A stretch of DNA of 63,484 nucleotides, filler included, from Intoshia linei (lineage: Eukaryota > Animalia > Orthonectida): NCBI GenBank assembly GCA_001642005.1. It is 7 parts of 7 records of this genome, joined end to end, with 100 filler letters (N's around TTAATTAATTAA, not from the genome) between each part and the next. Parts side by side here need not be neighbours in the genome. Positions count along the whole stretch, not along the records: positions 20,822 to 42,671 come from LWCA01000625.1; 6 more parts are not named here. One strand, given 5' to 3'. Within the stretch, counting starts at the first letter, position 1; the number at the start of each line of letters is the position of its first letter. This document shows positions 20,722 through 43,164 of the stretch, piece by piece. The notes under the pieces are model-generated. The model searched no databases. It saw only the letters and a list, made by a program, of their open reading frames with translations, and was not told where the DNA came from. A program made the position numbers and the translations under genes.

Positions 20722-22149
20722 NNNNNNNNNNNNNNNNNNNNNNNNNNNNNNNNNNNNNNNNNNNNTTAATTAATTAANNNNNNNNNNNNNNNNNNNNNNN
20801 NNNNNNNNNNNNNNNNNNNNNATGAAAGTTTTACAAATACAAATCAATTTAAAAATAAACATGAGCTTGTTAATTGAACTGAATTGGTAAATTCGTTGTT
20901 AGCAAAGTATGTATCAAACTCTTAATTGGCGTCTAAGACACATTCTTAGTCAAATACATTCTACGACTTGCCCGTGGAATGTGTACATTTATCAGTTGTA
21001 CACATTCTATGCAACATATATCTAAATGTTTATAATACAGTATTGTATAATATTGGAATTTACTCAAGATGATGTCTTTTCGATTGAATATATTACAGAT
21101 TCTTTTGACACGATCCATAATTTTCCATACAATATATTAAAACTTACTTAATAAGATTATAATTATCCTAAATTAATATTTAATAAAACCTTTTAATTTT
21201 ATGAAAATACTTATTGAATCGTATATATTTGATTAGTAAAAATATTAATTACTACATCTACATTGTACAATGTATCTGTATAATTATTGATTGATAAAAA
21301 TATTATTTATAAATATCAGAAGTACTTACAGAAAATTAGTTAAAAATATTAGAATTACATAATTTTTCAATTAGTGACATATTAAAAAGTCAAAAATTAC
21401 TTATCAATATATAAAACTATTTAAAACTTACAATGTAGCTAAGCTAAGATAATATTTTGATTTTAAGCATATTGATTTTGTGATATTTTATATTGTATAT
21501 TTTAGTAATCCTTGTAAATGACATAATTGATACCTTTGTCTCCCCATTTAAAAAGGAATCAAAAATGTGTAACAGTGATTATTAACCAATATTTATTAGT
21601 TAATTATTTTAGATATGATATCCAAAAATAACATTATTTTAAATATTTTTTTTTGTATCTTTTATCTAATTAACATATCTAACGTGTGAATCTACAAATC
21701 GAAGATAACATATAAAATGTAAGTGTAAATTTAGAAAAATCTTTTTTGCATGGATGCGAGAAGAAAATTTGATTTTCTTGAAATATCACCGTCCCTTAGA
21801 TGACCCTACCCCGTTTGATAATAACTAATTGTTCGAAAAAGTTGTATATTAATTTAGTTTTAAAAAGGCATAATTAATATTTTTTTAAGTGTACTTCAAA
21901 TAATTACATTTTCAATAAAATTTATTACAGAAAAAATCATAAAGTAGATGAAATACATTACATTTTATAGCTTTAAAGTCTACAAGTTACGATCATCGTA
22001 TTGCATTTGTTTAAATGTCACAAAACTGAAAAAATTTAGCTTGCGACCCAATCGCAATCAAATTTAATACAATATGTCTGATCTGTTTGTTACCGCCGAT
22101 GTATTCTTAAAAGTAAAATAAAAACATCACTTAACTTCAAATGGTTTTG

Positions 22150-22412
22150 TAACTATCCATTTTCAAATTTAACTTAAACTTCAGATTCATTTTTTAATTA
22201 AAAATTCCGAAATGATAAAGTAAAGCAAATTGTTTCAAATTATCGATTTTCAAATTTATTTTTTAATTAAAAATTCCGGAATGATAAAGTTAATAAAATT
22301 TTTTTGTATCTATTGATTTTCAAATTTATTTTTTAATTAAAAATTACATAATGATAAAGTTAATTCAAATTATTTTGTAACTATCGATTTTCAAATTTAA
22401 CTTAAACTTCAA
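22150..22412. repeat. Tandem repeat, ~62-bp unit, ~3 copies
   Basis: Repeated TTTTTAATTAAAAATTCCG.AATGATAAAGT...TATCGATTTTCAAATTTA. Confidence 0.75.
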
Positions 22413-23056
22413 TTTCATTATTTATTATTTTTTTTATATTATTGTTCTTATTTATTTTTTAATTTTATTAATTAAAACTGTTTAATAGTTTTTTTCACAT
22501 TTAATCCGCCAAATAAATTCAGTCTAACACTTCTGATTTAGAATGTACAGTATTCTCTCTATAACGCGCCATTCTTGAGATTTAGAAAAAGTTGGCGAGA
22601 TAGAGAATTTAAAATTTTAGAATTAACAATTACCTCTCCCCATGTTACTATTACAAAACTATTTGAATTAACTTTATCAGTATCCGAGAAATATAAATAA
22701 AACACATTTAAAGTAAATTTGTATTTAATTTTTTCATCTCAATAACTAAATGTACAATATGCGCAGTTTTGATTATAATGAAAATTTGAAAAATAATGAT
22801 TAATAATGGCAATGATTGTTTTGATCTGTAAATAAAAATATCTGAATTTTAAATTTAAGCCAAGGTATCTGCTAGAAATAACTTTTTTGATGTTGTGATT
22901 TCAAAACTATGACTCTTACATTCTTAACTAATATGTTAGACATGACATGTATGAAATTTCATTATAAAAGTTGCGATTATTATTTATTTATAATAAAATG
23001 ATATATATTAGATGATATAAAGGTGTCAATTAATTTTTATTTTTATAACATGTTAG

Positions 23057-26000
23057 TTATTGACTGTATGCGACATTTATTAAATAGCCAAGAGGCATGC
23101 TATGGCTGCAGAAAATTGGGATTATATTGGAATAATAACGATTGTACAGGTACTACAATTAATATAATTGATAAAATCCATAATTAGTTGTCGATTGCAC
23201 TGTAATTACAATAAACAGTAATAAATATATGTGTAATGCGTGTGAAGGGTATTACTATAACGGGATAAATTGTGTTGGTATGTTAATATATATTTAATTT
23301 ATTAATTTTAAATAAAAGGAAATGGACCTTCAAGCTGTGATGGTGTATCTGCAATAGTAAACTATTAATACTTTTATATTTTATTATATTCCTATGATTT
23401 ATATGTAATGTTATTATGTATTATGTGTATTATTGGAATGAACATATCATTTTATAGAACGAATCGTTATGCAACCAATGTTGGATGTTGACTGAAACTG
23501 GAAATGGTATTTTATTTAATAATCTAAATATAACTTATAGGCGATCAATGCGAAACAGCTGATAATAATTAGTGCCAAAAATGTAAACATAAATACATTG
23601 ACGATTCAAACAATTGCATCGGTATTAACTGTATTATCATTATTTAGTTTTTAGTATTTGAAAGGAATTTGACGATATCATCAAAAAGTATATGCGACCA
23701 ACTATTACAATCATATTGGGATGGGATAAATTGCACAGGTACAGAACACACTTTAATTTCATAATATATATGCGTGAATGTTAATGTTTATTAAAAAATA
23801 AAAATTTAAATATAGAATTGGCATCTGATGCCTGTACTAAAGCCGATTATCATACTTTTCTAACATCGATGGAAGAATGTAGTGCATGTTTAAATACTTA
23901 CTGGGATAATACAATAAATGGATTCTGTAAACGTAATTTTTTTATTATAATCCAATACCATTTAATTACATTAAATCAATTATAAATCAGCTTTGGATTG
24001 TACAAATATTCCTAATATTAACACTGAAAAAGTAAATTGTTTACGATGTGGTAATCTAAGAAAAAATAGATATTGGAATTCTGAAATCTGTCAAAGTAAT
24101 TATAAAATTAAAATTGTAAAGATATTGTTAGATATCAATTGTGAAAATTTGGATTTGTTAAATCATGATGAGTGCAATACGTGTTCTGAATCTTTCTATG
24201 ATGGAACGAACTGTGTCAGTAAGATTTTTTTTTGGTTTTTAATTATTTTTAAGAAATCGACTGTGAGAGACACCCTATGGATGTTTTAGAACGGTGTAGG
24301 GCATGTTCAAAGGAGTCAAATCCACTGGTTTGGTTAGTAAATAGGTCAAATTGTATAGGTAATTTACATTGTTACAGCTAAATGTCAAATGCTAAACTAA
24401 CCTATTTACATTTTTCAAACCAAAATATTTAACCAATACATTTTCAATCATGATATTAAATAGTACGACTATAATTTGGCGCTTTGCCAAATGCGTAAAG
24501 ATACTTATTTTGTTATCTTGATAAAATTTCATCTAACTTCCATGTAATATAGTTTATATAAATAATAGTTTATACAAAATATGTGTATAAATATTGAAAC
24601 TGTAAAACTTTTTAAAATTACCTTTCATCAACATTTTGAAAATTTGTAAATTTTTCTTTTTATTTTTGTAATTATATTTTAAATAATGACTTCATATATG
24701 TAATATTTTCATTTTGTTATGAATTTGTATTGATTTTTATTTTGTGTTTGTCAAAGTCTTAAACACCACGTTTTTAAGTATAGATTCTATAGATAACAAC
24801 ATACATGTAGTCAAAATACTATATAACATAGTCGCACTATTTTAAAATCATATTTTAAACATTAAGAACTTAATTTTGTTGTAATAGCCATCAATAATAT
24901 AATTAATGGCTATTTTGGATGCCTTTACATATAAAATTTGACATGTTCAATTTTACATGTATATAAAATTGAATGTCTGTGTGTGTTACCTTTAATTAAA
25001 AAACTAAAACACCTAGAATTAAAAAAACCCAATTTCTAATACATTTTTTTGAGTGCGATATTTTGTCAAAAATTTTATTTTCAGAAATTGAGTCATTCAG
25101 GGTCAAAAACCAAAATTAACATAGCTGCTATATATCAACTAAAAAAAATGTTGCGATTATTCAATTGAAATGAAATTTTTGATTCTTGGCATATGGGGTC
25201 ATATTGTATAAAAATTGAGAAAGCCGGATTAACCAGACCGCAGTTGAGTCGTTGCAACCATTGGCAGTTGGGAAACACTGAATGATATGATTGTATTTAA
25301 ATGATTATAAATATTACAGTATGCCCTGATGACTGCTCTTCATGTGGTACAATGGGATGTACGAACTGTATAAATAACACTTTTTGGAATGCAATAACAT
25401 GGAATTGTGAATCATGTCAAAATAATAATCTAGAAACGGAAATTAAATGCAATACTTGTATCGGTAGAGTATATGTTAACTTAGAATGCAAATGTACGAT
25501 TAATAGTAATATTTATTAATTTCTCATATTTGCAGATTGTCCTCAAAATTGTATTAAATGCATGACTGAATATAGCTGTGATGAATGTAGCGGTACAAAA
25601 ATTTGGTGGGATAATGCCTGTGTGGGTAATTTCATTAATATTACTAGTTATTGTAGGAGTGATTAATTTGTATGAGTTTCAATATCATCAATTTAATAAT
25701 TGTTACGGTATTATACTAAGCAGTGAAAATTGTATTAAAAAATGATATCACTTTTTATTGGGTTATTAAATTTTTTTGATCTTGACAATATATATATTTA
25801 TACCAACGGCATATAAATAGTTCTATAATGAACAATGTACATAATAAAAACTGAATACACTTATAAATGGTCATAACGCTTTCATCGATCAACTGGGCTA
25901 TGGCAACGTGTCGGTAACCTTGTTATATACAAGCAGAGTTGAACCTAGAAAGCTAGACGCCACCAAAAATGAAAAATAGTCTCCTAAAAAATTATTTAAC

Positions 26001-29000
26001 AAAGAGTTCGCAATTTTATACAGTCCTTAGACACCTCTTTAATGCTTTTGAATTGATATTTTAAATTTACCACACAAAATATATACTTTTTTATGTTATT
26101 TATTCACATAATTTTTTGAATGTTCAATTTGATAAAATCAGGCCTTCTTTATACAAACATTTTGTTGAGTTTTCAGACTTGGAGACTGGGATTACGGTTA
26201 AAGCCGTTTTAAGGCATGGGCAATATGGAATGTAGCCCAGGGCCACTCATTAAAAAAGGCCCCCAAATTAATAAAAGTACTTTACATTTATATCTTAAAA
26301 AGAGGCCCCTAATTTATTAAAAAATACTTCAGATTTATATTTTAAGAATCAGTTTATAACTTTTTAAGTGTGGGAATTCAAATAGCTAGAAAGAAAATAA
26401 TTTAAAGAATCATAATTCTGGTAATTATTCAATTTAAAATATTTCTACAATGTTCATTATATAATATTGACCTAAAAACTGTTTCAAATGATAATATTAA
26501 AACCTTTCTATTATTGAATATTCAAAAAAGAAAGTAGGAAATCTTTGATTTTCTCTTATTAATTTTCAATTAATTAATAAAGTTTTCGTAAAAGAAATAA
26601 AAGTTACTAGAAACTTACATAGTATCTTTTAATGCTTTTATTAATACTCAATGAAATAAGACTCTAAGTCTCCAACCAACCCTATTTCTTGTCTTCTAAA
26701 AATGGGCACTAAAATTTTATCGCTTCGTTCTTTAAAATTTTGGAACTTTAAAAAGCCTCCGGTCCTTTTCTTAGCCCAGATCCACGAAGTGGTTTAAGAC
26801 GGCTCTGGCTACGGAAGGTTCTCACTGGATGCAAGCATAATAAGTAGTATACTGCTTAAATATTATTATTAGATTCTTTCTACAAAGATAAAGAAAACTG
26901 TGAATCTTGCTCACTTATTCATTCATATTACTTTGAAAGTGGTTTATGTCAAAGTATATTTCTTATATTATAAATTTAATTTAAATTATAGCTTGCTTTA
27001 GTCACATGAATATTGATAATGCGTATCAATGCGTTCAATGTGGTTTATACATAAATAATAATGTGATGGGGAAATTTTGGGATCTGGATGTAGAAGAATG
27101 TTTAAGTATAATTTAAAATTATATAACTAGTTACTAGTACAATGAAACGGTACATTGACAACGAGTTATGAATTAGTTATTAGTAATAAATTATTATGTA
27201 CATTTTCATTTAATTCTAAATATAGAGACCCGTATCTGATTGGGTTCGACTATTACACGGTTTAATAAGGTGTGAAACAAGAGAAATCATTAACAAATAA
27301 TATTTATTCATGTATTATATATGTACTACATTGTATATATTTTAATCTATATAGTTTCTATATTTTAGTTTTAATAACACGAATAGTAAATTTATAATCG
27401 CTCGAAAAAATATATATTAAAAGTTATTTTTCACCGTTTTTACAAAAATTTACGGTCGTAGAATATAAAAAAAACCAAATTTCTAATACAGTTGTTACCA
27501 GCGCGTGTTTATATCCATTTTATAGATTCCGAATTCGACTGCTTCAAGATCAAAAACCCAAGTTTCCGTTTTGTTTAAAAAATAAATTAGCACAAAAATT
27601 TAATAAAATATGCATTCTGGGACAAATTTTAAAATTATTATCATTGTCGTAAATCTCAGCATCAGAATTTTTTTGAAATCATCTTTCATGGTCAAAACCA
27701 CAAATTACCCTATGTTTAAAAATGAAACATGTACTAAAATTTTATAAAACATAAATTCTGGGATTAGATTTTAAATATTTAAAATTATAAGCATTAGAAT
27801 AAATGGTAACCTCAAAAAAGTGCATTTTAGCGATCAAAACCCCATATTACCTTTTTTAAAAAAATAAAAAGGTAATGTGATATAACGGGTCCACGTGAAA
27901 AAAATTTTGGTACCTCTCCATTAAAGGGTTGATAATTATTATAATAGTGGATAGTAGTATTTTTAAGTTAGATTTTCTTATAGAATTTATTTTATTGTAG
28001 AATTAAAAATGTTTGCCTTCGGCAGATCTAGGATCCTGTTTGTACGAAGTACACAACAGTCAAGATAATTACTTTAATAATTAGATAATTAGATAATGAA
28101 ATTTGCATTGTATATATTTTTTAATCTACCATGGTCCATAGAATCCACTCTCTGGATAGAGTCACTTGTAAATTTATAAAATGTTTCATTTTTATTGTAA
28201 AGGAGTGTTTTTTATTTATGGATATTTGCGGTTGGATTAATTCACTTTATGACATAATTATCACTATTTGTTTACTTCTACTTAAATTATTATCTTTTAG
28301 ATTGTCCAACTATGTGCCTTGTGTGCTCCAATGCAGAGTTTTGTGATGTGTGTCCTGATGCAATGTATTATGAATATGAAACAAATTCTTGTGAAAGTAT
28401 TTATTATTAATAATAAATAATGGATCATATTATAATATAATATTATTATAGTATATTATAACTTATAAATCGTCATATACATGATAAACTGGTCGCTCTG
28501 AAGATTAGTTACTTTTGAAAGGGTTTCCAACCTTTTAGTTTGCAGTCCACTTAACTACTTATAAATAAATAATTCTAAATTTCTTTTTCAATTTTTAGTT
28601 TGTCCCATTTTGTGATTTCACCAATGTCTTCAAGATTTGAAATAATATTATCCAATTTCTAGGCATTTTGATTTTTTTTTCACTCTTAACAACAAATTCT
28701 GTTTCAAGTTGTCTCTTTTGAGATGTAGATAAATTAGTTATGTTAATAACATTTTGATTTTAAGCGCCGTTTAGAGAGTGTTCTATTCCTAGAATCAGAG
28801 CCGTACTTACCACTTTAGAAAATAAAAATAGACCACAAGCAAAGGTCTGTAAACGATGCGTAGTCGCATAGTCACCTCTTCAAGGATGTTTCTTTGACAT
28901 TTTAAATTTAGCACACATAATGTTTATAAATCATAAATTATGATATTCACATGTCAATCATATAATTTTATTAATACTTTAGTTGTATTAATGATGGCCC

Positions 29001-32000
29001 TTTTCCAACAAATTTCGTCGAGTCCCTCTACCCTCCCCCATTAGATGTGTCATTTTTGAGAGCGACCACTTTATATTTAATTTTAGGATGTTTAATTAAC
29101 TGTGCAAATTGTAAAACTTCAAATACATGTTTAAATTGCGAAGAAGGATTTTATTTAAATAATGAACCACCATCATGCAATGGTATACATTTTTTATTAA
29201 AATTTATAATTCATTCTTTTAATTAAATCGGTGCCACTCTCGTCATCTATATTATAAATATACATACTCTACTTAGTATGTTTGAAAAATAAAAATTTTT
29301 AAATCGTTCTGATACCTAATTTCATATCTGCACCATAGAAACGTATATTTTTTTAATATGGGTGACCAAGGTATAGGATATTTTATATAAAATATTAATA
29401 GTATTAGGTATGGTTTCTATGGCTACCTTTCCGACTATTTCGTTAAACTCTCCCACATGTCAAAGTTATATGGGTCCCAACATTGGAAACTACTATTGTA
29501 GCGAGAGAATACTGTAGTATATATCAAATATTTATACATCATATCAAGATAAATTAATTTAGTTTGCCCTAAATCATGCAAAATGTGCATTTCGTCTAAT
29601 TTTTGTTTGGTATGTAACGATAATACTTATTGGAAATCTGAAATAGGTTTTTGTAAATGTAAGTAGTGTCGTTTACACTTTATTATGAATCGTTTTTAGC
29701 ATGCATACCTAATTGTAATATTTGTAGCACTGCTGAACCATGTACTAAATGCGATCCTAAATATTATTTGCACATTGATGACTCACATAATTGTCTATGT
29801 ATATTACTTGCCCTTATATATTTAAGATATTATATAATTATGTATAACATAATTATAATTTCATTTATATGCTATTTATTAATTAGCTTGTTCGGTAAAT
29901 TGCTATGAATGTTTATCTGATAAATATTGCTTAACGTGTGATGAAAACTTTTGTCTCAACAAAAATAAAGAATGTATAGGTTTCATTTTTAAGATAATAT
30001 ATATTAAATTACATAATAATATTAAATATTATATAATTATATTATTAAAAAGTACTAAAAAATTTATAAGTAAATTTTGGAATTTAGCTGATACACATAA
30101 TTGTTTAACATGTAATCAAGATTATGGATTAAGTACTTATTCCTGTGAGACTTGTATTAAAAATTACAAACTTAAATTATGCTTAGGTATTTCAATATAA
30201 TATTAAAAATATAAATATGGTATAATTTAATTATTAAATTTAGAATGTAGTCAAAATTGTTTAATTTGTTCAGATGGTGAAAAATGTACAAAATGTATTG
30301 ATGGCTATTATATTTATTCCTTCTTTTGTCACAGTAATTAAAAAAAATTTTTATTGTTCAAAGTTTAAAAATTTTTAGTTTGTCAGGAAAACTGTTTAGA
30401 ATGTTCATCTGAAACAAATTGCTCAAAATGCAAAATTGGATATTATTTTGATTCAAAAGAAATAGAATGTTTAAGTAAATGACTTTCATTAATTTGGATT
30501 TAATGTTTTAATTTAGAATGTCCTGAAAATTGTGCTACATGTAAAAGTAGAGATACCTGCAGTGCTTGTGTCTTTGAAAATTACTTTTTCGATGCTGAGT
30601 TGAATATGTGTTTGAGTAAATTAAATTTTTTGCATATTCATATTTTTATTACATATATATTATATTAAATTACATATATTATAGTGTAAAAAATTTTAGC
30701 ATGTAAAAACAACTGTAAATCTTGTACAAGTCAAAACAAATGTGTACAATGTTACGATGATTCTGTTTTTGATACTACTATATCGCCATCATCTTGTACA
30801 AGTAAACTGTTATTTTCAACGAATTTAAAAAATGTATTAGAATGTTCTGTTGCAATTGAAGGATGTAGAAAATGCCGTATGTTGAATGAAAACTTATATT
30901 GTGACAATTGTTATGAATATTATATGCTAGGAAAAAACGATAAATCGTGTATTAGTATGTTTTAACACAATCAATTTCTAGTAATTTTTAAAGTTTTTTA
31001 AACTTCTAATGTACCAATTTGAAAACAATTCCAAAAATGAGATAAATGTGATATTTATATTTTTTTAAGTTTTCTATTGGAAAATATAAATTGTCAACTC
31101 TATGAAATGAATTAAATTTTGAAAGATAACTTCTTTTAAACATCTCGTTCTAAATTAATATACATGTATTTATTAGAATGCCCTAAAAATTGTAAAATTT
31201 GCATGCAACAAAATGATATTTGTACAAAATGTAACACAAATCACTATATATCTAATGATCAAGCAAATTGCTATACTAAAAGGTGTTTTGAATGCCTTTC
31301 TGGTAATAATTCATGTGCAAATATCACATCTACATCAATTGGAAACAAGTATGGATGCAAACATTTGGGAGTTGCATCGAGTTGTTGGGTAAAATTTTAT
31401 TATTTTTCAATAATTTTATTTAGATAACAACAAAATCAAAATTTAATGAAACAATTAATATTTCTTATTCACGTACGTGCAAATCAATTAAATGCCCTAA
31501 AGATTCAAATAATATGATGTGTACTAATTCATTTTCTACTAATGAAACAGTAAATATACTAATTTACTCTACTTATTATATTTGTTCAATTCAAAAAAAA
31601 TTTAAAATACATTTGTATTTTCTGTTAATAATACGTAAAAATATATAAATTTAACTGGAAACGTGTCCTTTTTTTTGAAAATCAAACGAGATCGATAATT
31701 TAGAAAAATATATACTCTGATACGGATTTTAAAATCATAAATATTATTATAAATTTATATTTAAAAAAATATATCTTCAGGGCCAAAACTACAAATTACA
31801 CTTTGTTTTAATGAAAACAGCCCTATAATTTTTAAAAATTTACAGGTGGTAGAGTTGTATCATGTTAACATACATAAAAAATTTCAATCCGAATAAGTGA
31901 TGACTTCACGGTCAAGAAAGCATTTTAGTATTCATATATTTTTTTTCCGAAATATTTTATTAAAACAAAAAATATGAAATAATTAATAATCCGAAAATTT

Positions 32001-34062
32001 AAAAAAAGGATTATTCTAATAGAGATTATTCCAGTTGATATAATTACAAAATTTCAACCCCAGAAAACTACGCATTCCCGGTGAAAAATAATTTTTAATA
32101 TATTATCAACGAATATTTTTCAAATATTTCGATTAAAATAAAAATGAAAATGCAAATTGATCCTACAATTTTAAAAATAAAATGTGCATTGAACAACATC
32201 TACACATTTCCAATAAAGAAATATGGGTGAAAATCTATTTAATTCATTCCTTCGGAATTTTTTTCATTTTACACAATTTTAAATCTCAAATTCTCTCTTT
32301 CAAAACATTTTGTTTAAAATTTAAATTGAAACTACAACAACGATTACTAAAAGTAATACAACTTTGTTATTATTATTTTTATATTTATTACAATCTTTTG
32401 CAATATTGGTAAAATTCGCCTAAAATATGTTTAATATGAAAGTGAAGATTCCGTAAATTATTGATACATAATTGGTATTTTTAAGTATTTATTAAATTGT
32501 TACTGAATATATATTATCACATTGAAAATGACAAAATAGGTTTTTATAATTTTATTTTTTTTGGAATTTCTGCTATTTATGACAATTTTTAGGATTGGAC
32601 TAATTTTACTTTTTTTAATATTATACACACATTCTGTCTAATAAATTAAAAAAATGAAATAACAATTGTTTTTAAAATTCTTTACGCAAATATTAACAAA
32701 CAAAAAATTAAGATGGAATAATTCACTTTAAAGTAAAAAGTAATGTGATATGATGGTTCCAGCTGAAACAAATTTGGGAACCACTTCTTTAAAGGATTGA
32801 TAATAGTGAATAGTAGGATTTTTAAGTTAGATTTTCAACATGAATTTATTTTTTTGATATAATAAAAATGTGCCCTCGGCTAGGTGGTGTGTCGTATTGA
32901 TATAATCATGTTTTCATTTGATATGGTCATGTTTGCGTTTGATTAAGTCATGCTGTCATTTGATATGGTTATATTTGCATTATTAAGTATCAGGGATTGT
33001 AAATAATTGATTTCAGTAATAATAGTAGTAAATAATATTTTGCAAATAAAATAGTTTGATATCCTTACTTATATAATTCGCTACGCAATATTTGTTTGTG
33101 TGTGTGTTCCACTTTATTTCAATAAGTACCAGTCTTAGAATTTTATAAAGTCCACATTTCAATTACAGTTTTTCCTGGATGATAAGATAAATTTCAATCT
33201 CCCAAACTCAACTTACAGGTCAAAACCCCAATTTTCTTTTTTTTTTTGAAAATGAAACGAGTTGGAGAATTTAAAAAAATATATACGCTGATAAGGATTT
33301 TAAAATCAAACATTAAAACTAATACAATTTTGTTATTATCATTGTTATATTTGTTACAATCCTTTGCAATATTGGTAAAATTCGTCTGAAATATGTTTAT
33401 AAAGTGCTGATTCCGTTAATTATTGATACATAAGTATTTATTAAATTGGTATTGAATATATATTATCACATTGAAAATGACAAAGTAGGTTTTTATAATT
33501 TTATTTTTTCTGGAATTTATGCTATTTATGACAATTTTTAGGATTGGACTGTTTTTACTTTATTTTTAATATTATACACACATTCTGTCTCATAAATTAA
33601 AAAAATGGGATAAAAATTGTTTTTAAAATTCTTTAAGCAAACGTTAACAAAAAAAATTAAGATGGAATAATTCACTTTAAAGTTAAAAGTAATGTGATAT
33701 GACGGTTCCACCTGAAACAAATTTGGGAACCACTGGTCTATAGTATACATTTTAATATACTAGTAATGAATAATACTATACGACAATTATTATTAATGCT
33801 TACACTAAATGTCTTAATTACATTCTCATTGGATAATAATACTTATAATTAGATTATATTGATTATACATTGTTTGTGGTATGTATTACATTTTATATGT
33901 AATTTAATTCAAAATGTATTGTAGGTATGTGAGAGATGCTGTAGTGAAGATAGCTGCAATTATGGTTTAATCAGCTCAGCAATAACTCATCAATCAAATA
34001 TTGTTTTTTATATATCAATGCCATTACTTTTAGCAAAAATTATTTATTTATTATATTTGTAA
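23057..34062 (+). CDS. Large cysteine-rich (CXXC/furin-like repeat) surface protein with C-terminal Ly6/uPAR domain and GPI-type tail; ~28 exons; 5' end unresolved; one in-frame TAG
   Basis: Successive ~80-175-nt, mostly phase-1 exons such as CPENCATCKSRDTCSACVFENYFFDAELNMCL. Terminal exons CFEC..SC..GC..SCW|..SRTCKSIKCP..MC..|VCERCCSEDSCN then hydrophobic IVFYISMPLLLAKIIYLLYL*, with AATAAA immediately after. TAG at 23570-23572. Confidence 0.85.
26199..26807. mobile_element. hAT-type MITE in an intron of the Cys-rich gene
   Basis: Imperfect TIRs TAAAGCCGTTTTAA / TTAAGACGGCTCTG; flanks ATTACGGT / GCTACGGA (5/8 match) resemble a decayed 8-bp TSD. Confidence 0.6.
31660..33735 (+). mobile_element. 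Two tandem partial copies of the Helitron family in the last intron of the Cys-rich gene
   Basis: High similarity to 3915-5160; 5' end ATCCTTACTTATATAAT at 33061. Confidence 0.78.
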
Positions 34063-34450
34063 AAAATAAAAATTAATTTAATATTTTGTATATATTCCAA
34101 TTATTACATTCCCAAAGTAATAAATGTAATGAATTTTTATTTGATTTTTCAATTTTTACTAAATTCATTTTTTATATATCATTTTAAAAATATTTTTATA
34201 TCCAATAAATACATTATGGTAAAGATTTAACAATATTACCTGTTTTTTAAAATTGAAAAAAGTCCCATAATTTAAAAAAACATAAATTCTAGAACCCTAT
34301 GGATCACATGCCCACGTTTGAAGTATTCGATGTAATACACTATTGTATATATAGTTTAATAGTATTTAAAATTTTACATATAACATGAAATTTAAGCATC
34401 AATTTTGAATATATTTGATTGAATTCTTGAAGAAGAAGGATTATATCGCT

Positions 34451-37400
34451 TTATAAATTATTTAATGAAATTGAATGAGTATATTCATCAATATCAAATT
34501 TTAACTTTGTATCGTCATTATAAATACCAGTATCATAACCACATTTTTTCAAATCCTTGAGTACTACATTTAAATGTAAAAATACGTTTCCTTGTGATCG
34601 TACTCGAGTTACTAATTAAATGTATATCGTAATTACAGTGTACAATGAAATTACCTTCTCTTCCATCTCCTTTAGACAAAACTTTTGGTTCAACAAATTC
34701 AGGTCTACGACTATATAACCAAGAAATAAAAGTTTGGAAAATTGAACTGCTTTCTGGTACAAACATTGGAACTTTAATTATGTGGCTAAACAACATTTAT
34801 AAATTTTAAATTGTCAATAAATTAAAATAGTTAACAGTTAACCGTTAACGTATAATGCAATTTAAACCTACACTAATTAGTTTTAAATATTTTGATCAAC
34901 GTTTTAATAAAAAATTACTTTCCTGGGGTAACTGGTAAATGGCATACACCATATCCACGAACAACATCCCTACCAAATATATCGTATCCATAAGTGTGTA
35001 ATATTATTTGAGGCCCTATAAATTTTACATTTAACGTGTAATTAAATATATTAATATAATAAAAATAGTTAAATATACATCCAAACGGGTTTGTGCTTTT
35101 AAAAGATATGTCCAAAGGAAAATTAAAGGTAAAATGATTGCTGTGAGTATCTTTATGGGTAGTTTGCGTTATCCCCTCTTCTAATCCCTAAATATTTGTA
35201 TAATAAGTAGGCCCAAACAAAAGTTAATAAAGTTAATTTTTGATATGTTAAACAGTTTTAAATTTCATGCAGGATAGCACCGATATTATCAATATTAATT
35301 AGCTAATTAAAAAATTTTAAAGTTAATAAAGTTACATCGTTATCTCAAAAGTTACATTTTTTTAATAAAATTACATTTCGAAAATTATAAATTATAAAAG
35401 TACTTTTTTGACCTTAAAGACATCACTTATTCAGATTGAATTTTTGTACGTGTCTTAACAGGATACAACTGTACCATTTGTAATTTTTTTTTAAATTCTA
35501 GGGCTGTTTTCATTTAAAAAAATAATGGTAATGTGGGTTTTGATAGTGAAAATTATCTTTTTTGATGTTTAAATATATGATAATGTTTATGATTTTAAAA
35601 TCTACCCCAGAATTTATGTTTACAAAAATTTTAGGACATGTTTCATTTTCAAAAAAAAGGGTAATTTGGGGTTTTGACAATGAAGGTATGAGTTTCTGGG
35701 GCTGAGATTAACGACAATGTTAATGATTTTAAAACGCGTCCCAGAATGTATATTATATTATTTAATTTATATTTAAAAATTTAAATTTTTGGGCATTTTT
35801 TTTAACAAAAGGGGAAATCGTATCATGGGGCGGAATTATTATCTGACCGGACCATTGATGACACTTCAGGTTCCTGATTTTCCAATGACTTACAATAGAA
35901 AAATAATTTTCGTTATTTGTCTCAGTATAGCTACAATATTTCTATAAGGATAAATTGATGTGTACATTTGAATATATTAAATTACTGAAATTATTGCCCA
36001 ATCTTGTCCAAAGCTAAAACCATATTTACAATATATATCTTGAAATGATTCAAACTAAAAGTATCGTAAAATTATAATTTAAAAAGAATAGAAGAAAAAA
36101 GCAAAAATTACTCTATATCCTAACTTACATATATATTATATATATTGTATATAAAACTCTTTGTTTGTCCGTCTGTTTGTCTGTATGTGTGTGTTATCGT
36201 TTATTTCAATAACTAAGAGTCTTACAATTTTAAAAGTTTCACATTTCTATTACGTTGTTTTCCAGATAAAATTAACATAAATTTCAATCTCATAAACTTA
36301 CATCTTAGCTATCAAAACCCCAATTATCCTTTTTATAAATCAAACGAGTCCTAGAATTTAAAAATATATCCTTTGATGCAGATTTCAAAAAATGAAAATA
36401 GTCCCAGAATTAAAAAAAATTACAGTTGATACAGTTATCTCAAGATTGTACACACAAAAAATTTTGATTTGACAAAGTGACGTTTTCGCGGTCAAAAAAC
36501 CATTTTTATAAAGATATCACTTATATAAAACAATTTGTTTTACTGTCTATCTTTGTATGCATTATCTTTATTTTATAAAAAAACCGCATAGTCCTAGAAT
36601 ATAAAAAATATCACATTTAATACAGCTTTTTCCAGTTACAATATATAAAAATTTTCGAAGTTAATTTAATCATTTATTTTCAATAAAGGAATTTACTGTT
36701 TATCCTTTTTTTTGGAGAAATTATGTCATTAAAAAACAAAAAATTTGATATAATTAATAGTCCCAAAATTAAAAAATAATATGATATATTTGAGTACTTA
36801 AATTTTATAAAAGTGTGTAGTATGTATAAGTTATCAGGGGCGAACATATCGTACACAAGATGTCTCTCGAGGTTTCAACGAAATTATAAACCATTTTTTC
36901 AATTGAGCATTTAAATTTATTATATTTTTCAATATTAAACTATCAAGTCGAAACTGGTGAAGAGTTGGCTAAGGGTTATATGAAATTACGTATTTTCAAT
37001 GTAATAATATGTAATGTATGTAATAAAAAAACTGGCTGATAATATATTAAAAGATATTTTTGACAGAAAATCCGTAGACTTGTTTGGTTTTAATTTTTTC
37101 TCTAGATTAACTAGAATAAAGCCTATTAGAATAATCTTTTGTTAAATTCTAGGACTAAAATTTTAGAAAGTAGTTATTTAATATATTTTGTTTGAATAAA
37201 ATAATTATCAAATAAAAAAATCAATACTATAGTGATTTTTTAACCGTGAAGGCATCAATTTGTGAAATAAAAATATTTTGAGTAGGTTAAATGGAAATAA
37301 CTCGATTAGCTCAAATTTTTTAACAATTCTATATAATCAAAAATCTACTAATAGATACAGTAGGACTTTTTTCATTTTTTCAAAAATTAATCAAAAGGGT

Positions 37401-39397
37401 CATCTGTGATCTGACCGATCCATGGAAAATTTTTGAGGGTACGATTTATGAAATTCTCATTATTTTAAAAACTATCTCAGAATTTATCTTTTATAAATTT
37501 CGACATTTTTCATTTATTTATTTTACAAAAAAAAGATAATTTTGTTTTTTTGACAATAAAGATGTAAGTTTCTTAGATTTAGATTATCGAATAAATTAAT
37601 GATTTTAACACGCGTCCCAGAATTTTTGTTTTTTTAAATTCTAAGGCTGATTGCATTTTAAAAAAACAGTGTCAATTGTGTTTTTGACCGTGAAGGACTC
37701 AATTTCTGACAATTCAATTTACGATAAAACATGAATCTCGAAAAACTATATGAGAATTTGAGTATTTGAAATCCTTGGACTGTTAATTTTTAAATTAAAC
37801 GGTAACACAGATACACAGATATTCAATGTTATATAAGTAAAGGATTATAAATTATAATAAGCATAATAATAATACTTTGCACAGTATTGGTCAGGGATTG
37901 GAATTAATTGTTTGGAATTAATTGCTTTATGAAAAATAAAAAATTTCAATTGATTAAGATTGATAACAATATCATAATCATGTTTAAAAAACTGTCATGT
38001 GGTCATAATGAATACTAGGATGCTGTTTGTTCGAAGTACATAAAAGTCAAGCTAGAAGGTTAAATACATCATTTTTCTGTTTATTAGTTAATTTTTTCAT
38101 CCAACCATTCGTCAATAAAATGATTCAATTTATATTTTTTCAGTTATATGAAAAAAACCAATTAATTGAAAATTATCTTTTCATTTTTTAAATTAATTGG
38201 TTTATACATAATAATTGATTGTAATCAATTATTTCTAATCCCTGGTATTAGTTGTTAAATGTTGTTAAAATAGTAATACTTTTCTGACCGTAAAGGTATG
38301 CATCTCTATCAGTCATGAATTTTTCTTAGAATTTGTGTTTTTAAATTCATAGATTCGTCATAAATTTTGTCAATAATTATCAAAAAAAACACCGCTACAC
38401 ACACTAAGACATAAAATTTAAATGTTATGCAAATAGAGAACCTTTGTTAGGGGCGAATCCAAGAAGATAGTTAATGAGGTGCGAGCGAAGCCAGCAATTT
38501 ATTTAACTTGGCCGAAGGGCAAAAAATTTTTAGGGGCGTCTCTTTTAATATCAAGGCGTCTAGTTTGATTTTAAATCGTCTCTTTTAATTTCATTTCAAG
38601 GTTGTTATACAATAGTTTCCAAATTGGTATTTTTCCGCATCATTGAAAAAATGATCAGCACAAAAAAAAAAGAAATTAATTTTGTTCATTAAATAATCCT
38701 AAATCAATTAGGTTCAGTCTTCTTAGATGAAGTATTGCAAATTCATTAACCAAACTTTCAATATCAAAATTATAGTCATAGTGGCAATTCATGAGGGCCA
38801 GTCCACATAGACGATTACCAGTCATTGTTGATCTTAAAAAGGTTTTCAATCTTCTCAAAAATTTTTTAAAAAAATTTGCAAAAAAAGTGCAACTGCACCT
38901 TCTGCACCCCTTGAATCTGCCCCTGTTTCTAACATAAATAACGACAAAGTAAATACTATTAATTATTTCTTAAGACTCATCTTGCGAAATGAAATTATAT
39001 AAAAAAAAATCAGATTCTCTAACATAATAAAATGAACTATACGTTAAAATGTATAAATTAAAATAAACATGTTATTTTAAATGTAAAAGTATATAGGATA
39101 TAAGAAATAAATAAAATACTTAAGGGTTATGCCAGATAGGACAAAATTTATCGAACCTAAAATACATGGTTCTAATTTGAATAAAACCAAACACTGTACA
39201 ATAGTGTATAATTAAAATTGAATCCAAGCATATTAAAAGAATCAATGAATGTATTAAATTTTAAATGTAAATTATTTAAAGTTTAAAAATAAAAATTGAA
39301 TTACTATGAATAACCAATAAATACATGAACAAATTACTTGAGCATTTTCAATTTGACCACAAACTTTTAACATGAATACTGTCAACTTTGCATCCAT
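34451..39397 (-). CDS. B9D1: B9 domain-containing protein 1 (ciliary transition zone), 6 exons
   Basis: [20 protein letters not shown]|[23 protein letters not shown]|[24 protein letters not shown]|[18 protein letters not shown]..|..[27 protein letters not shown]|[13 protein letters not shown]; collinear with known B9D1. Confidence 0.95.
38448..38925 (-). mobile_element. Internally deleted hAT (Tip100/Blackjack-like) element retaining the dimerization-domain C-terminus
   Basis: TIRs TAGGGGCGAATCCAAG / CTTGAATCTGCCCCTG; [34 protein letters not shown]. Lies in B9D1 intron 1. Confidence 0.85.
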
Positions 39398-41066: not shown

Positions 41067-42112
41067 ATGGGGTATTTGAAAATGTTGGCAATATGCCTAA
41101 CACTAACCTGTAATATTTCCATTTGCATTTTCAATTTATTTTAGATTTTATTTGTGGAATTTCAGCAATGGGTAAAAGTAAAAAAATTAGATATTAATTA
41201 ATATAGCATCCGGAAAATGTCCTATTACAAATTGCAAAAAATGCAACGATCAACCGATAGAATGTTTAGAATGTCAAAAAGGGTATTTTGATGATACCGT
41301 AAACAACAAATGCGGACGTTTATTTAATATTTTAATAATTGTATTAAAAATTTAGAATGTCCTACCGGTTGTTCAGAATGTTCATTAAAAGATACATGTT
41401 CTAAATGTAAAATTGCTAAATTTTGGGAAGCTACTTTAAAAATGTGCTATGGTATAAACATAAAAATTTTGAGTGATTATCTTTAGGCTGTCCAATTCTT
41501 TGTGATGAATGCGATAATGATTTGTCTTGTAAAACTTGTATGCAAAATTATTACAAAATCAGTTTAAACATTAAATGCATTGGTAATATTTTTATTTCAT
41601 TTGCTTGATTTCATATTTTTTAGCCTGTTCATTGGGGTGTAGTGATTGTTATTCTACTTCAGATTGTAAATTTTGCAGACCTGGTTATTACATTGTTGGA
41701 ACTGTTGGTGCCAAATATTGCACGAGTATTATTTTACTTTTTCAGTCTCTAATTTAATAATGTAGAGTGTGCGTCAAATTGCGATTCGTGTAACGATGGT
41801 TCATCATGTACTATTTGTAAACCCGATTTTTACTGGAAATCGAGCAGCAAAGTCTGTGCAAGTAAACATTGTAGTATTTTTTCTCATAGTTTAGCATGTG
41901 GAAGCAATTGGATCAAATGTGACCACAATAATGGATGTACGTCCTGTGATCCAGGATACATTGTAGCAAATGAATTATGCAAACGTATAAATATTGTAGT
42001 TCATTTTTAACCATTCCAATAGCATGCCCAGAACTCGGGAGTGGTGATTGTTCATATTGTCGAGATGAAACTATGGGAAGAGAATGGGATACTGCGTCTC
42101 AAACTTGTTTGT
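41067..42112 (+). CDS. Second CXXC/furin-like repeat protein with signal peptide, 9 exons visible, 3' end unresolved near a gap
   Basis: MGYLKMLAICLTLT|YFICGISAM|ASGKCPITNCKKC.. followed by phase-1 repeat exons (CPTGCSECSLKDTCSKC.., CPILCDEC.., CASNCDSC..) separated by ~33-41-nt introns. Confidence 0.85.
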
Positions 42113-43164
42113 GTAAGTTTAAATTATTAACATTTTTTTAGGAACCATTATTACACTGCACTTCACTCAAATAATTTTTGGGTTGTAACCCATATTTTAA
42201 GAATATTTAAGGTTATATCTCCACATCACAGAAAAAAATAAAAAAATGAATGGTTAATGAGATAATTACACTCATTCAATTATTTTCAATACTAGTTACA
42301 ATTACAGGTATTTCTTGGCGAACATTCAGTTGAGCGATGTATTGTTAAAGTGACATGATCATAGATTTTGCAAATTGATGATATCATTGATTTTTTGACC
42401 AAATTTTTGTGGGATCCATTAAAGAAATTTTTCAACTAAAATTTTGTAGGGTTTTTAAGGGAAGTTTTTTTCAGCCAATTTTAATCATTTTTAAGACACT
42501 TTTGGGATCAAAATTTAATAGGGATTTTTAAGGGAAATTTTTTAACATTTTAAGAGTTCTTCAAAATCTTTTAAAATTAAGTTAAAAATGTTTCCTTGAC
42601 TTGTTTTGAAATTTGAAGGTTAAATTCTTATTTAAATATTATTATTATATTTTAAAAGTTAAATATATTTANNNNNNNNNNNNNNNNNNNNNNNNNNNNN
42701 NNNNNNNNNNNNNNNTTAATTAATTAANNNNNNNNNNNNNNNNNNNNNNNNNNNNNNNNNNNNNNNNNNNNTAATTAAATTGATTTAGTTTGTAGTTTTA
42801 ATTTCGATTTCATAAATCTTTCACTCTTTTCATTATTTTCGTTGGAATTAATGTTTAAATTCTTAAAACCATCTCATTTCTTCTTTATGGGTTATTAAAA
42901 ATTTTGCTTTAAATGTTTTTTTATAAAATATTTCAATGACTTATCAAATAGAAAAAACTTATATACTTCGTACAAACAGCACCTAGCTCTCAATTAATCA
43001 ATCAATTTCCGAAAATAATATTCATGAGACTACAATCTATCTTAAAAATATATATAAAATTTGTTTTTTTTAAAAATATGATTTACTTTTTAAATATAAT
43101 ATTTTAATATTGAAATTTTGATTATTTGATATTTCTATTACATTGCTTAATTTTAAATGTGTAG

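Follow-up and report, generated by a model that had tools for sequence, protein, structure and literature searches.

A gene of the orthonectid Intoshia linei, a parasitic worm, most plausibly encodes a rod of about 25 cysteine repeats that is followed by a membrane-proximal 12-Cys module of the Ly6/uPAR (LU) type and a GPI signal, and its 3′ end is mis-spliced in the public gene model; we give this reading a probability of roughly 0.6. All coordinates are positions along the whole stretch of DNA that was analyzed (the window, 63,484 nt), and the gene, A3Q56_04679, lies within the part of it derived from contig LWCA01000625.1 (20,822-42,671). It is one gene of at least 27 exons on the + strand, and its source bears out the original prediction that this is an animal gene. 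The piece delimited by that prediction was also accurate, as it begins at 23057, close to the annotated ATG (23050), and ends with the stop codon at 34062. The public product, OAF67579.1, has 903 aa and is titled "hypothetical protein," while the splicing predicted here would give a true product with a length of about 930 aa from the annotated Met onward. The name assigned automatically in UniProt, "RanBP2-type domain-containing protein," appears to be an artifact of the CxxC motifs, a database entry that the present result corrects. The intron sizes of the locus are typical for the I. linei genome (PMC6543705). A ciliate genetic code was ruled out, as TGA interrupts the gaps between coding segments too and these gaps are GT..AG introns.

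The rod is encoded by the following features, which are listed together with one set of intronic positions.

23050-24357, + strand: nine annotated N-terminal 4-Cys repeat exons, C-x10-14-C-x2-C-x9-13-C, in which YW often precedes the last Cys
25319-27104, + strand: four mixed 6-Cys and 4-Cys repeat exons, with long repeat-laden introns of ~1.2 kb between them
28303-30953, + strand: eleven canonical 6-Cys repeat exons of the furin-like/VSP type, one repeat per phase-1 exon, with introns mostly of 35-110 nt
30016-30054: positions inside the intron at 29979-30086

Segmentation of the annotated product by exon gave units of 28-40 aa, most of which occupy a phase-1 exon each and are separated by tiny introns, and 14 of the 16 unambiguous introns are in phase 1. 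The N-terminal half of the rod belongs to the 4-Cys class and the C-terminal half to the 6-Cys class. The array is strand specific and far above chance: within the piece, the strict six-Cys motif (C-x2-4-C-x2-C-x3-9-C-x2-C) had 17 occurrences on the + strand and none on the − strand, and none arose in 50 shuffles. The long CXXC-repeat stalk that had been predicted is present, and the claim of more than 20 divergent repeats is borne out because the ~25 units share a mean identity of 18% at non-Cys positions. Judged by their sequences, the repeats are old and diverged, without recent amplification. The annotated junction after ...WKSEI (~29646) loses the sixth Cys of that repeat, which a GTAAGT donor at 29659 (7.6 bits) would regain. 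The product contains 11 N-x-S/T sequons, 5 of them in the 12-Cys module, which may be taken as a sign of an extracellular location.

The best PDB sequence match of the repeats was to the furin-like (FU) repeats of R-spondin-1 (E ~0.003), and the repeat half of the exon that bridges the rod and the module is matched by P0002, a Furin-like_2 protein. Among the furin-like repeat profiles (PF15913/PF00757), Furin-like_2 gave E=0.63 on one exon. The FU repeats of R-spondin, of the Eph-receptor Cys-rich region, and of the PCSK5 Cys-rich domain are similar CxxC disulfide modules; however, the Intoshia units are shorter, with 4 or 6 Cys, and the gene has no protease, receptor, or thrombospondin part and does not reach the Furin-like_2 cut-off.

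One homolog, P0008, comes from an organism other than Intoshia and is a protein of 1,451 aa encoded by a single open reading frame with 49% GC, on transcript contigs from SRR28002504/SRR28002475 and two JGI samples. It matched with a database E value of 4.5e-16 and a pairwise E value of 3e-32, collinearly over ~710 residues. A clear signal peptide is followed in P0008 by collinear repeats, a 12-Cys module ending in CC-x4-CN, and a hydrophobic tail. The two proteins thus share the overall plan, both repeat classes, the module, and the GPI-type tail but are only 25% identical, and P0008 has ~40 repeats instead of 25. A metagenome scan with P0016 returned one further locus only, which was identical. 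These comparisons place the gene in a small unnamed family that also occurs, with the same plan, in at least one other eukaryote. The suggestion that this is a lineage-specific coat is refuted by the original prediction's own test, because P0008 shares the architecture.

The same homolog bears on the 5′ end of the gene, where the annotation places the start Met (23050) within a repeat. No signal peptide follows this Met, and upstream there are candidate 5′ exons only, of which the following is one.

22806-22827, + strand: candidate first exon, with an ATG, a short hydrophobic start (MAMIVLI), and a GTAAAT donor

This exon could be spliced to an acceptor at 23011 in phase 1, and further candidate starts exist, e.g., an ATG at 21615. 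The start inside a repeat, the missing signal peptide, and the mere 2.2 kb of sequence that the contig holds upstream would all fit a larger gene, either convertase-like (PCSK5/furin type) or encoding a receptor, of which only the 3′ part is seen here and the 5′ exons lie beyond the contig start. We consider this very unlikely. No Pfam-detectable exon was found in the 2.2 kb upstream, and a subtilisin catalytic domain with a P domain was found neither there nor in P0008, a full-length homolog in which the repeats follow the signal peptide at once; catalytic domains are absent, as expected from the predicted lack of a subtilisin or kinase exon. The contig itself holds several candidate short 5′ exons. 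The C terminus of convertases and receptor kinases is a transmembrane segment with a cytoplasmic tail, unlike the LU-type module and GPI signal of the gene described here.

The 3′ end comprises the following features.

31177-31388, + strand: bridging exon, in which the last 6-Cys repeat (CPKNC...) runs uninterrupted into the start of the module (RCFEC...SSCW)
31424-31549, + strand: second module exon (ITTKS...STNET), with three Cys and three N-x-S/T sequons, in phase 0 on both sides
31550-33924, + strand: last intron of the revised model, 2,375 nt
33853-33882, + strand: disputed 30-nt mini-exon of the GenBank model (IILIIHCLWY), with an acceptor of 7.4 bits and a weak donor (-0.1)
33925-34062, + strand: last exon, encoding VCERCC-SEDS-CN, small residues, a polar spacer, and a 20-residue hydrophobic C terminus, followed by TAA

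The bridging exon matches P0001 residues 769-838, and its GTAAAA donor is in phase 0. It carries both the last repeat and the beginning of the LU module, and the LU exons are therefore part of the same gene; a separate transcript for them is what the original prediction had named as evidence against itself. The last intron of the GenBank model is non-canonical, with no GT..AG solution, and the final exon is read out of frame; the LU-type ending and the GPI-type tail are hidden in the public model because of this frameshift by mis-splicing. In the revised model, the strong GTAAAT donor at 31550 (8.7 bits) would be joined in phase to the acceptor at 33924, which is canonical and average (3.6 bits). 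The intron between them is inflated by a tandem duplication of ~950 bp (32348-32797 versus 33314-33746, ~91% identical) and by dispersed MITE-like repeats that recur in other introns. The last exon matches the C terminus of P0008 with z=6.3 (0/500 shuffles), and the six reading frames of the piece contain a single CC-x4-CN, where ~0.06 would be expected; together these indicate that the exon is coding. The second module exon falls collinearly just upstream of the last-exon match in P0008, although this exon and the LU part of the bridging exon gave no significant alignment to P0008 on their own. A homology search with the C-terminal region returned only the protein itself, and one with the last exon returned nothing, including no transcript-derived fragment.

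A rival acceptor at 33852 is stronger (7.4 bits), and read-through from it gives a hydrophobic C terminus that might itself be an anchor signal. It is conceivable, but in our view improbable, that either the GenBank 3′ end or an end at the stop at 33922 reached via this acceptor is real and that the CCSEDSCN exon is unused, belongs to another transcript, or is a relic. The non-canonical GenBank intron, the match of the CCSEDSCN exon to P0008, and the uniqueness of its motif all argue against this; moreover, no upstream exons for a separate LU gene were found between 31650 and 33925, and only the direct 31549-33925 join gives an even number of Cys. The mini-exon at 33853-33882 has a GC content of 20%, would make the number of Cys odd if used, has no counterpart in P0008, and is probably non-coding. 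With the direct join, CN is followed by 14 mostly small or polar residues, reading ...SSA (the candidate GPI omega region) and ITHQSN, and then by the 20 hydrophobic residues, which run up to the stop at 34060-34062 without a cytoplasmic tail. By heuristic reading, these are the small omega residues, polar spacer, and terminal hydrophobic stretch of a GPI C-terminal signal, in agreement with the GPI-type tail that had been predicted.

The module that precedes this tail has 12 Cys in ~89 residues over three exons (the LU part of 31177-31388, 31424-31549, and 33925-34059) and runs from C-x2-C at the start (RCFEC) to C-x2-CC-x4-CN at the end (VCERCC-SEDS-CN). The P0008 module has 12 Cys in 91 residues, with spacings C-x2-C, C-x13-C, and C-x2-CC-x4-CN. 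Both modules show the LU motif, defined as an N-terminal C-x2-C, a C-terminal CC-x4-C-N, and 8-10 or more Cys within 70-100 residues. The 12-Cys module ending in CCSEDSCN and its Ly6/uPAR hallmarks, as originally proposed, are therefore present, the ending lying behind a canonical acceptor in matching phase. Ly6/uPAR proteins such as CD59, Lynx1, Drosophila Quiver/Sleepless, and Schistosoma SmLy6 likewise have the C-x2-C start, the CC-x4-C-N end, a module of ~90 residues, and a GPI-type signal directly after it. Classical members, however, have 8-10 Cys and are built from a single small domain or from as many as three LU domains, whereas the Intoshia module has 12 Cys, longer first and second loops, and no profile match and is preceded by ~830 residues of Cys repeats, to which it is fused within one exon.

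Profile and structure searches were less informative. The Pfam families UPAR_LY6, QVR, Toxin_TOLIP, and Activin_recp had no match in the Intoshia exons (searched singly) or P0001 and none in P0008, P0016, or P0017 even at E≤10, and no Pfam family of any kind reached its cut-off over single exons, P0001, P0008, and P0017. An exon-by-exon PDB sequence search gave nothing significant, with a snake short neurotoxin matching the RCCSEDSCN motif only (E=2). The AlphaFold model of the homologous module P0017, built from a five-sequence alignment, had a mean pLDDT of 34. In a language-model protein atlas, the named neighbors of P0017 all belonged to the three-finger clan (TGF-beta receptor II ectodomain, Activin_recp, and UPAR_LY6/Toxin_TOLIP), with scores of 0.75-0.82 that are below evidence level; the atlas was uninformative on P0001 residues 800-880.

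It may be that the stalk is real but that the module is a family-specific Cys-rich cap whose CC-x4-CN ending arose by convergence, a reading that we find doubtful. It would account for the lack of a Pfam LU-clan match in any member, the AlphaFold result without a confident fold, the atlas scores at chance-prone levels, and the C3-C4 spacing of 13, as this spacing is shorter in classical LU domains such as CD59. Set against it are the textbook LU context, in which the C-x2-C start, the CC-x4-C-N end, and a length of 89-91 residues adjoin a GPI-type signal, the single clan to which all named atlas neighbors belong, and the conservation of Cys count and size between two very distant homologs. We infer that the module is a member of the three-finger (Ly6/uPAR) group, as suggested by its motifs and by the weak language-model lead.

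Ly6/uPAR modules and furin-like repeats are each well known, and we found no description in a literature search or in Pfam of their fusion in one GPI-anchored rod. The public Intoshia annotation conceals this fusion by its mis-spliced 3′ end. From the architecture of the protein, we hypothesize that it enters the secretory pathway and that a GPI anchor replaces its hydrophobic C terminus near ...SSA. This would place the three-finger module on the outer leaflet, with an extended, disulfide-knotted, and glycosylated Cys-repeat rod reaching outward from the cell as a coat component that is structural or adhesive. The orthonectid genome reportedly retains only ~9,000 genes, and a 27-exon surface protein that survived this gene loss and is also represented elsewhere can reasonably be proposed as part of the parasite's outer surface. 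Antibodies or in situ probes could be aimed at it directly. Schistosome Ly6 (SmLy6) tegument proteins sit on the parasite surface (PMC4839075, PMC4492491). More tentatively, the gene may belong to an ancient and hitherto unrecognized animal family of "stalked three-finger" GPI proteins, in which a Ly6/uPAR-type module carries a rod of 25 to 40 furin-like units and which would have been kept in the reduced orthonectid genome because the protein builds a host- or sea-facing surface layer, either the plasmodium membrane or the microvillar cuticle.

The original prediction had instead proposed a VSP-like surface antigen of lineage-specific architecture, which could be a variant parasite coat serving immune evasion at the host interface. 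Giardia VSPs, ciliate VSP-family proteins and immobilization antigens, and Entamoeba Igl also have a long CXXC-repeat ectodomain, and Igl and the ciliate antigens are GPI anchored, and the stalk and tail of the Intoshia protein resemble these protist coats; the closest relatives of the stalk by sequence include ciliate VSP-family (PF03302) proteins (25-29% identity), Intoshia is an endoparasite with a plasmodial stage, and a paralog lies 7 kb downstream. We nevertheless regard a variant antigen as unlikely. The Pfam VSP match (20.7 bits) is below the gathering cut-off (31.4), and a transmembrane segment with a CRGKA-type tail is absent, as the hydrophobic end runs to the stop. In contrast to the protist genes, this one is from an animal, is divided into phase-1 exons, and encodes a three-finger-like module at its end, which the protist proteins lack. 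The age of the repeats and the shared architecture of P0008 also speak against this reading, and whole-length and bridging-exon searches, which had limited sensitivity and length windows, found no other Intoshia protein. Nothing suggests a variable surface antigen. A hAT-transposase resemblance elsewhere on the contig (38679-38969, − strand) had no Pfam match even at E≤10. On the number of paralogs, which had been proposed as a check, one small local copy and, within the searches above, no multigene family were found.

41067-42138, + strand: downstream paralog, with an annotated product of 250 aa and a signal-peptide-like start at 41067

This paralog has at least six Cys repeats, which share 30-45% identity with the repeats of the main gene. 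Since a GTAAAT donor in phase 1 comes after the last exon that is visible, the paralog probably extends further and is truncated by the end of the contig.

Window positions 20822-42671 are the complete Intoshia linei (Orthonectida) contig LWCA01000625.1 (assembly GCA_001642005.1; 21,850 nt, 24% GC). Three genes are annotated on it:

23050-33970, plus strand: A3Q56_04679 / OAF67579.1, a "hypothetical protein" of 903 aa in the GenBank annotation (here the Cys-repeat gene)
34451-39397, minus strand: annotated B9-C2 ciliary transition-zone gene, with Pfam matches on two exons (E=2e-19 and 4.5e-07)
41067-42111 (taken here as 41067-42138), plus strand: annotated paralogous Cys-repeat gene, 250 aa, with a signal-peptide-like start

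Six-frame translation of the contig showed many short, Cys-rich, stop-free pieces, exclusively on the plus strand, where a strict six-Cys motif occurs 17 times (0 on the minus strand and 0 in 50 shuffles). A ciliate genetic code was considered and rejected; the gaps between these pieces carry TGA besides TAA and TAG and have GT..AG at their borders, and they are therefore read as tiny introns. An unambiguous canonical solution exists for 16 of these introns, 14 of them in phase 1, and their sizes, mostly 35-100 nt, agree with the published genome median of 57 bp (PMC6543705). The annotated product, mapped back onto the DNA, contains ~25 repeat units of 28-40 aa; the N-terminal half is made up of a 4-Cys class, and the C-terminal half of a 6-Cys class. 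Identity between repeats at non-Cys positions averages 18%, which indicates that the repeats are old and diverged. One annotation error removes the sixth Cys of a repeat, which is recovered by using a GTAAGT donor at 29659. There are several candidate short first exons, the best being ATG 22806 with a GTAAAT donor. The product (P0001; UniProt A0A177AZY0) has been auto-named "RanBP2-type domain-containing protein", which looks like a spurious pattern hit on the CxxC motifs; Pfam detected no zinc-finger family in P0001.

The original prediction was that the Cys-repeat stalk and a C-terminal Ly6/uPAR (LU) module form one surface protein. The exons of the module do not belong to a separate transcript, as a single uninterrupted exon runs from the last 6-Cys repeat into the beginning of the module. 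The 3' exons in the model that we prefer are as follows:

31177-31388, plus strand: bridging exon, last 6-Cys repeat and RCFEC..., followed by a 35-nt intron
31424-31549, plus strand: second module exon, ending ...STNET, followed by a 2,375-nt intron
33925-34062, plus strand: last exon, VCERCC-SEDS-CN and tail

Past CN, the tail begins with small residues, passes through a polar spacer, and ends in 20 hydrophobic residues directly before TAA. The CC-x4-CN signature occurs once in the six frames of the contig, against ~0.06 expected. The GenBank model instead inserts a 30-nt mini-exon (33853-33882), after which its last intron lacks any GT..AG solution and the final exon is translated in the wrong frame. 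Splice sites were scored with matrices trained on the introns of the Cys-repeat gene itself:

Splice-site scores at the 3' end of the Cys-repeat gene
donor 31550, after ...STNET: 8.7 bits
acceptor 33924, before VCERCC: 3.6 bits, inside the training range
acceptor 33852, before the mini-exon: 7.4 bits
donor 33883, after the mini-exon: -0.1 bits, lower than every training donor

On sequence grounds we would prefer the direct join of 31549 to 33925, because the mini-exon has a GC content of 20%, makes the Cys count odd when included, and lacks any equivalent in the homologue P0008.

P0008, a 1,451-aa protein from transcript contigs and one of the distant relatives retrieved by the whole-length search described below, is the decisive one. 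It has a clear signal peptide and ~40 Cys repeats, is collinear with P0001 over ~710 residues (pairwise E=3e-32), and ends in a module of 12 Cys and 91 residues with a C-x2-C start and a C-x2-CC-x4-CN end, followed by a spacer and a hydrophobic C-terminus. Its source contigs are mRNA-like (117-nt 5' untranslated region [UTR], uninterrupted 4.35-kb coding sequence at 49% GC, and 2.6-kb AT-rich 3' UTR) and were recovered from two SRA runs; two JGI samples contain versions at 95-96% identity. The Intoshia module was compared with P0008 one exon at a time using a local alignment script. The last exon matched the P0008 C-terminus (z=6.3; 0/500 shuffles); the middle module exon aligned collinearly, immediately upstream, at a score that was not significant alone, and alignment of the first part of the module was not significant. 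Among 1.84 billion representative proteins, a search with the bridging exon retrieved nothing beyond the product of the gene itself and a Furin-like_2 repeat protein of Tritrichomonas. A whole-length search returned no other Intoshia protein; the distant relatives, at 25-29% identity, were ciliate VSP-family proteins and several unnamed proteins. P0007 (Logan, 1,468 aa), distantly related to the stalk, carries a DOMON domain at its N-terminus together with VSP-type repeats and ends in a hydrophobic C-terminus, a further unnamed Cys-repeat surface architecture.

Like Ly6/uPAR domains, the module starts with C-x2-C and ends with CC-x4-C-N, measures ~90 residues, and is immediately followed by a GPI-type signal. 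At the profile level it is not placed in the LU family: Pfam gave no match in the Intoshia exons taken singly, in P0001 or P0008, or in the C-terminal fragments P0016 and P0017. The predicted structure of the homologous module, from a shallow alignment, had a mean pLDDT of 34. In the language-model features of a protein atlas, the P0017 module adjoins the TGF-beta receptor II ectodomain, Activin_recp, LYPD2/UPAR_LY6, and Toxin_TOLIP clusters, all four of which belong to the three-finger clan, with scores of 0.75-0.82 that are at lead level by the atlas's own rating. Given this combination of motif, profile, atlas, and structure results, we term the module "LU-like" and put the probability of a three-finger fold at roughly 70 to 75%.

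No catalytic or signaling domain was found on the contig or in full-length P0008, and the product has 11 N-glycosylation sequons. It is inferred to be a GPI-anchored, glycosylated rod at the cell surface that serves as a structural or adhesive component of the coat. A variant-antigen role is not supported, since the sole family expansion seen is one small local paralogue and the design is common to another organism. The annotated stop of this paralogue (41067-42138) is probably intronic, because a phase-1 GTAAAT donor comes after the last repeat; if so, the 3' end of the paralogue would fall past the contig end, together with any LU module.

The long last intron of the Cys-repeat gene is expanded by a ~950-bp tandem duplication (32348-32797 versus 33314-33746, ~91% identical) and by MITE-like repeats, which occur in other introns as well. 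These dispersed direct and inverted repeats, of 50-120 nt and 60-90% identity, lie at 27420-28010, 31670-33750, 34235-34295, and 35390-37800. The B9-C2 gene has introns of unusual length for this genome, filled with the same dispersed repeats. As MITE-like families are spread through the long introns of the two genes, the few long introns of this compact genome look like results of repeat insertion. A 97-aa stop-free stretch (38679-38969, minus strand) with a tentative resemblance to a hAT-transposase C-terminal region had no Pfam match even at E<=10. Tandem repeats of ~70 nt (families D6/D7) at 22136-22424, in the 5' flank of the Cys-repeat gene, could be a promoter-region satellite or another element.
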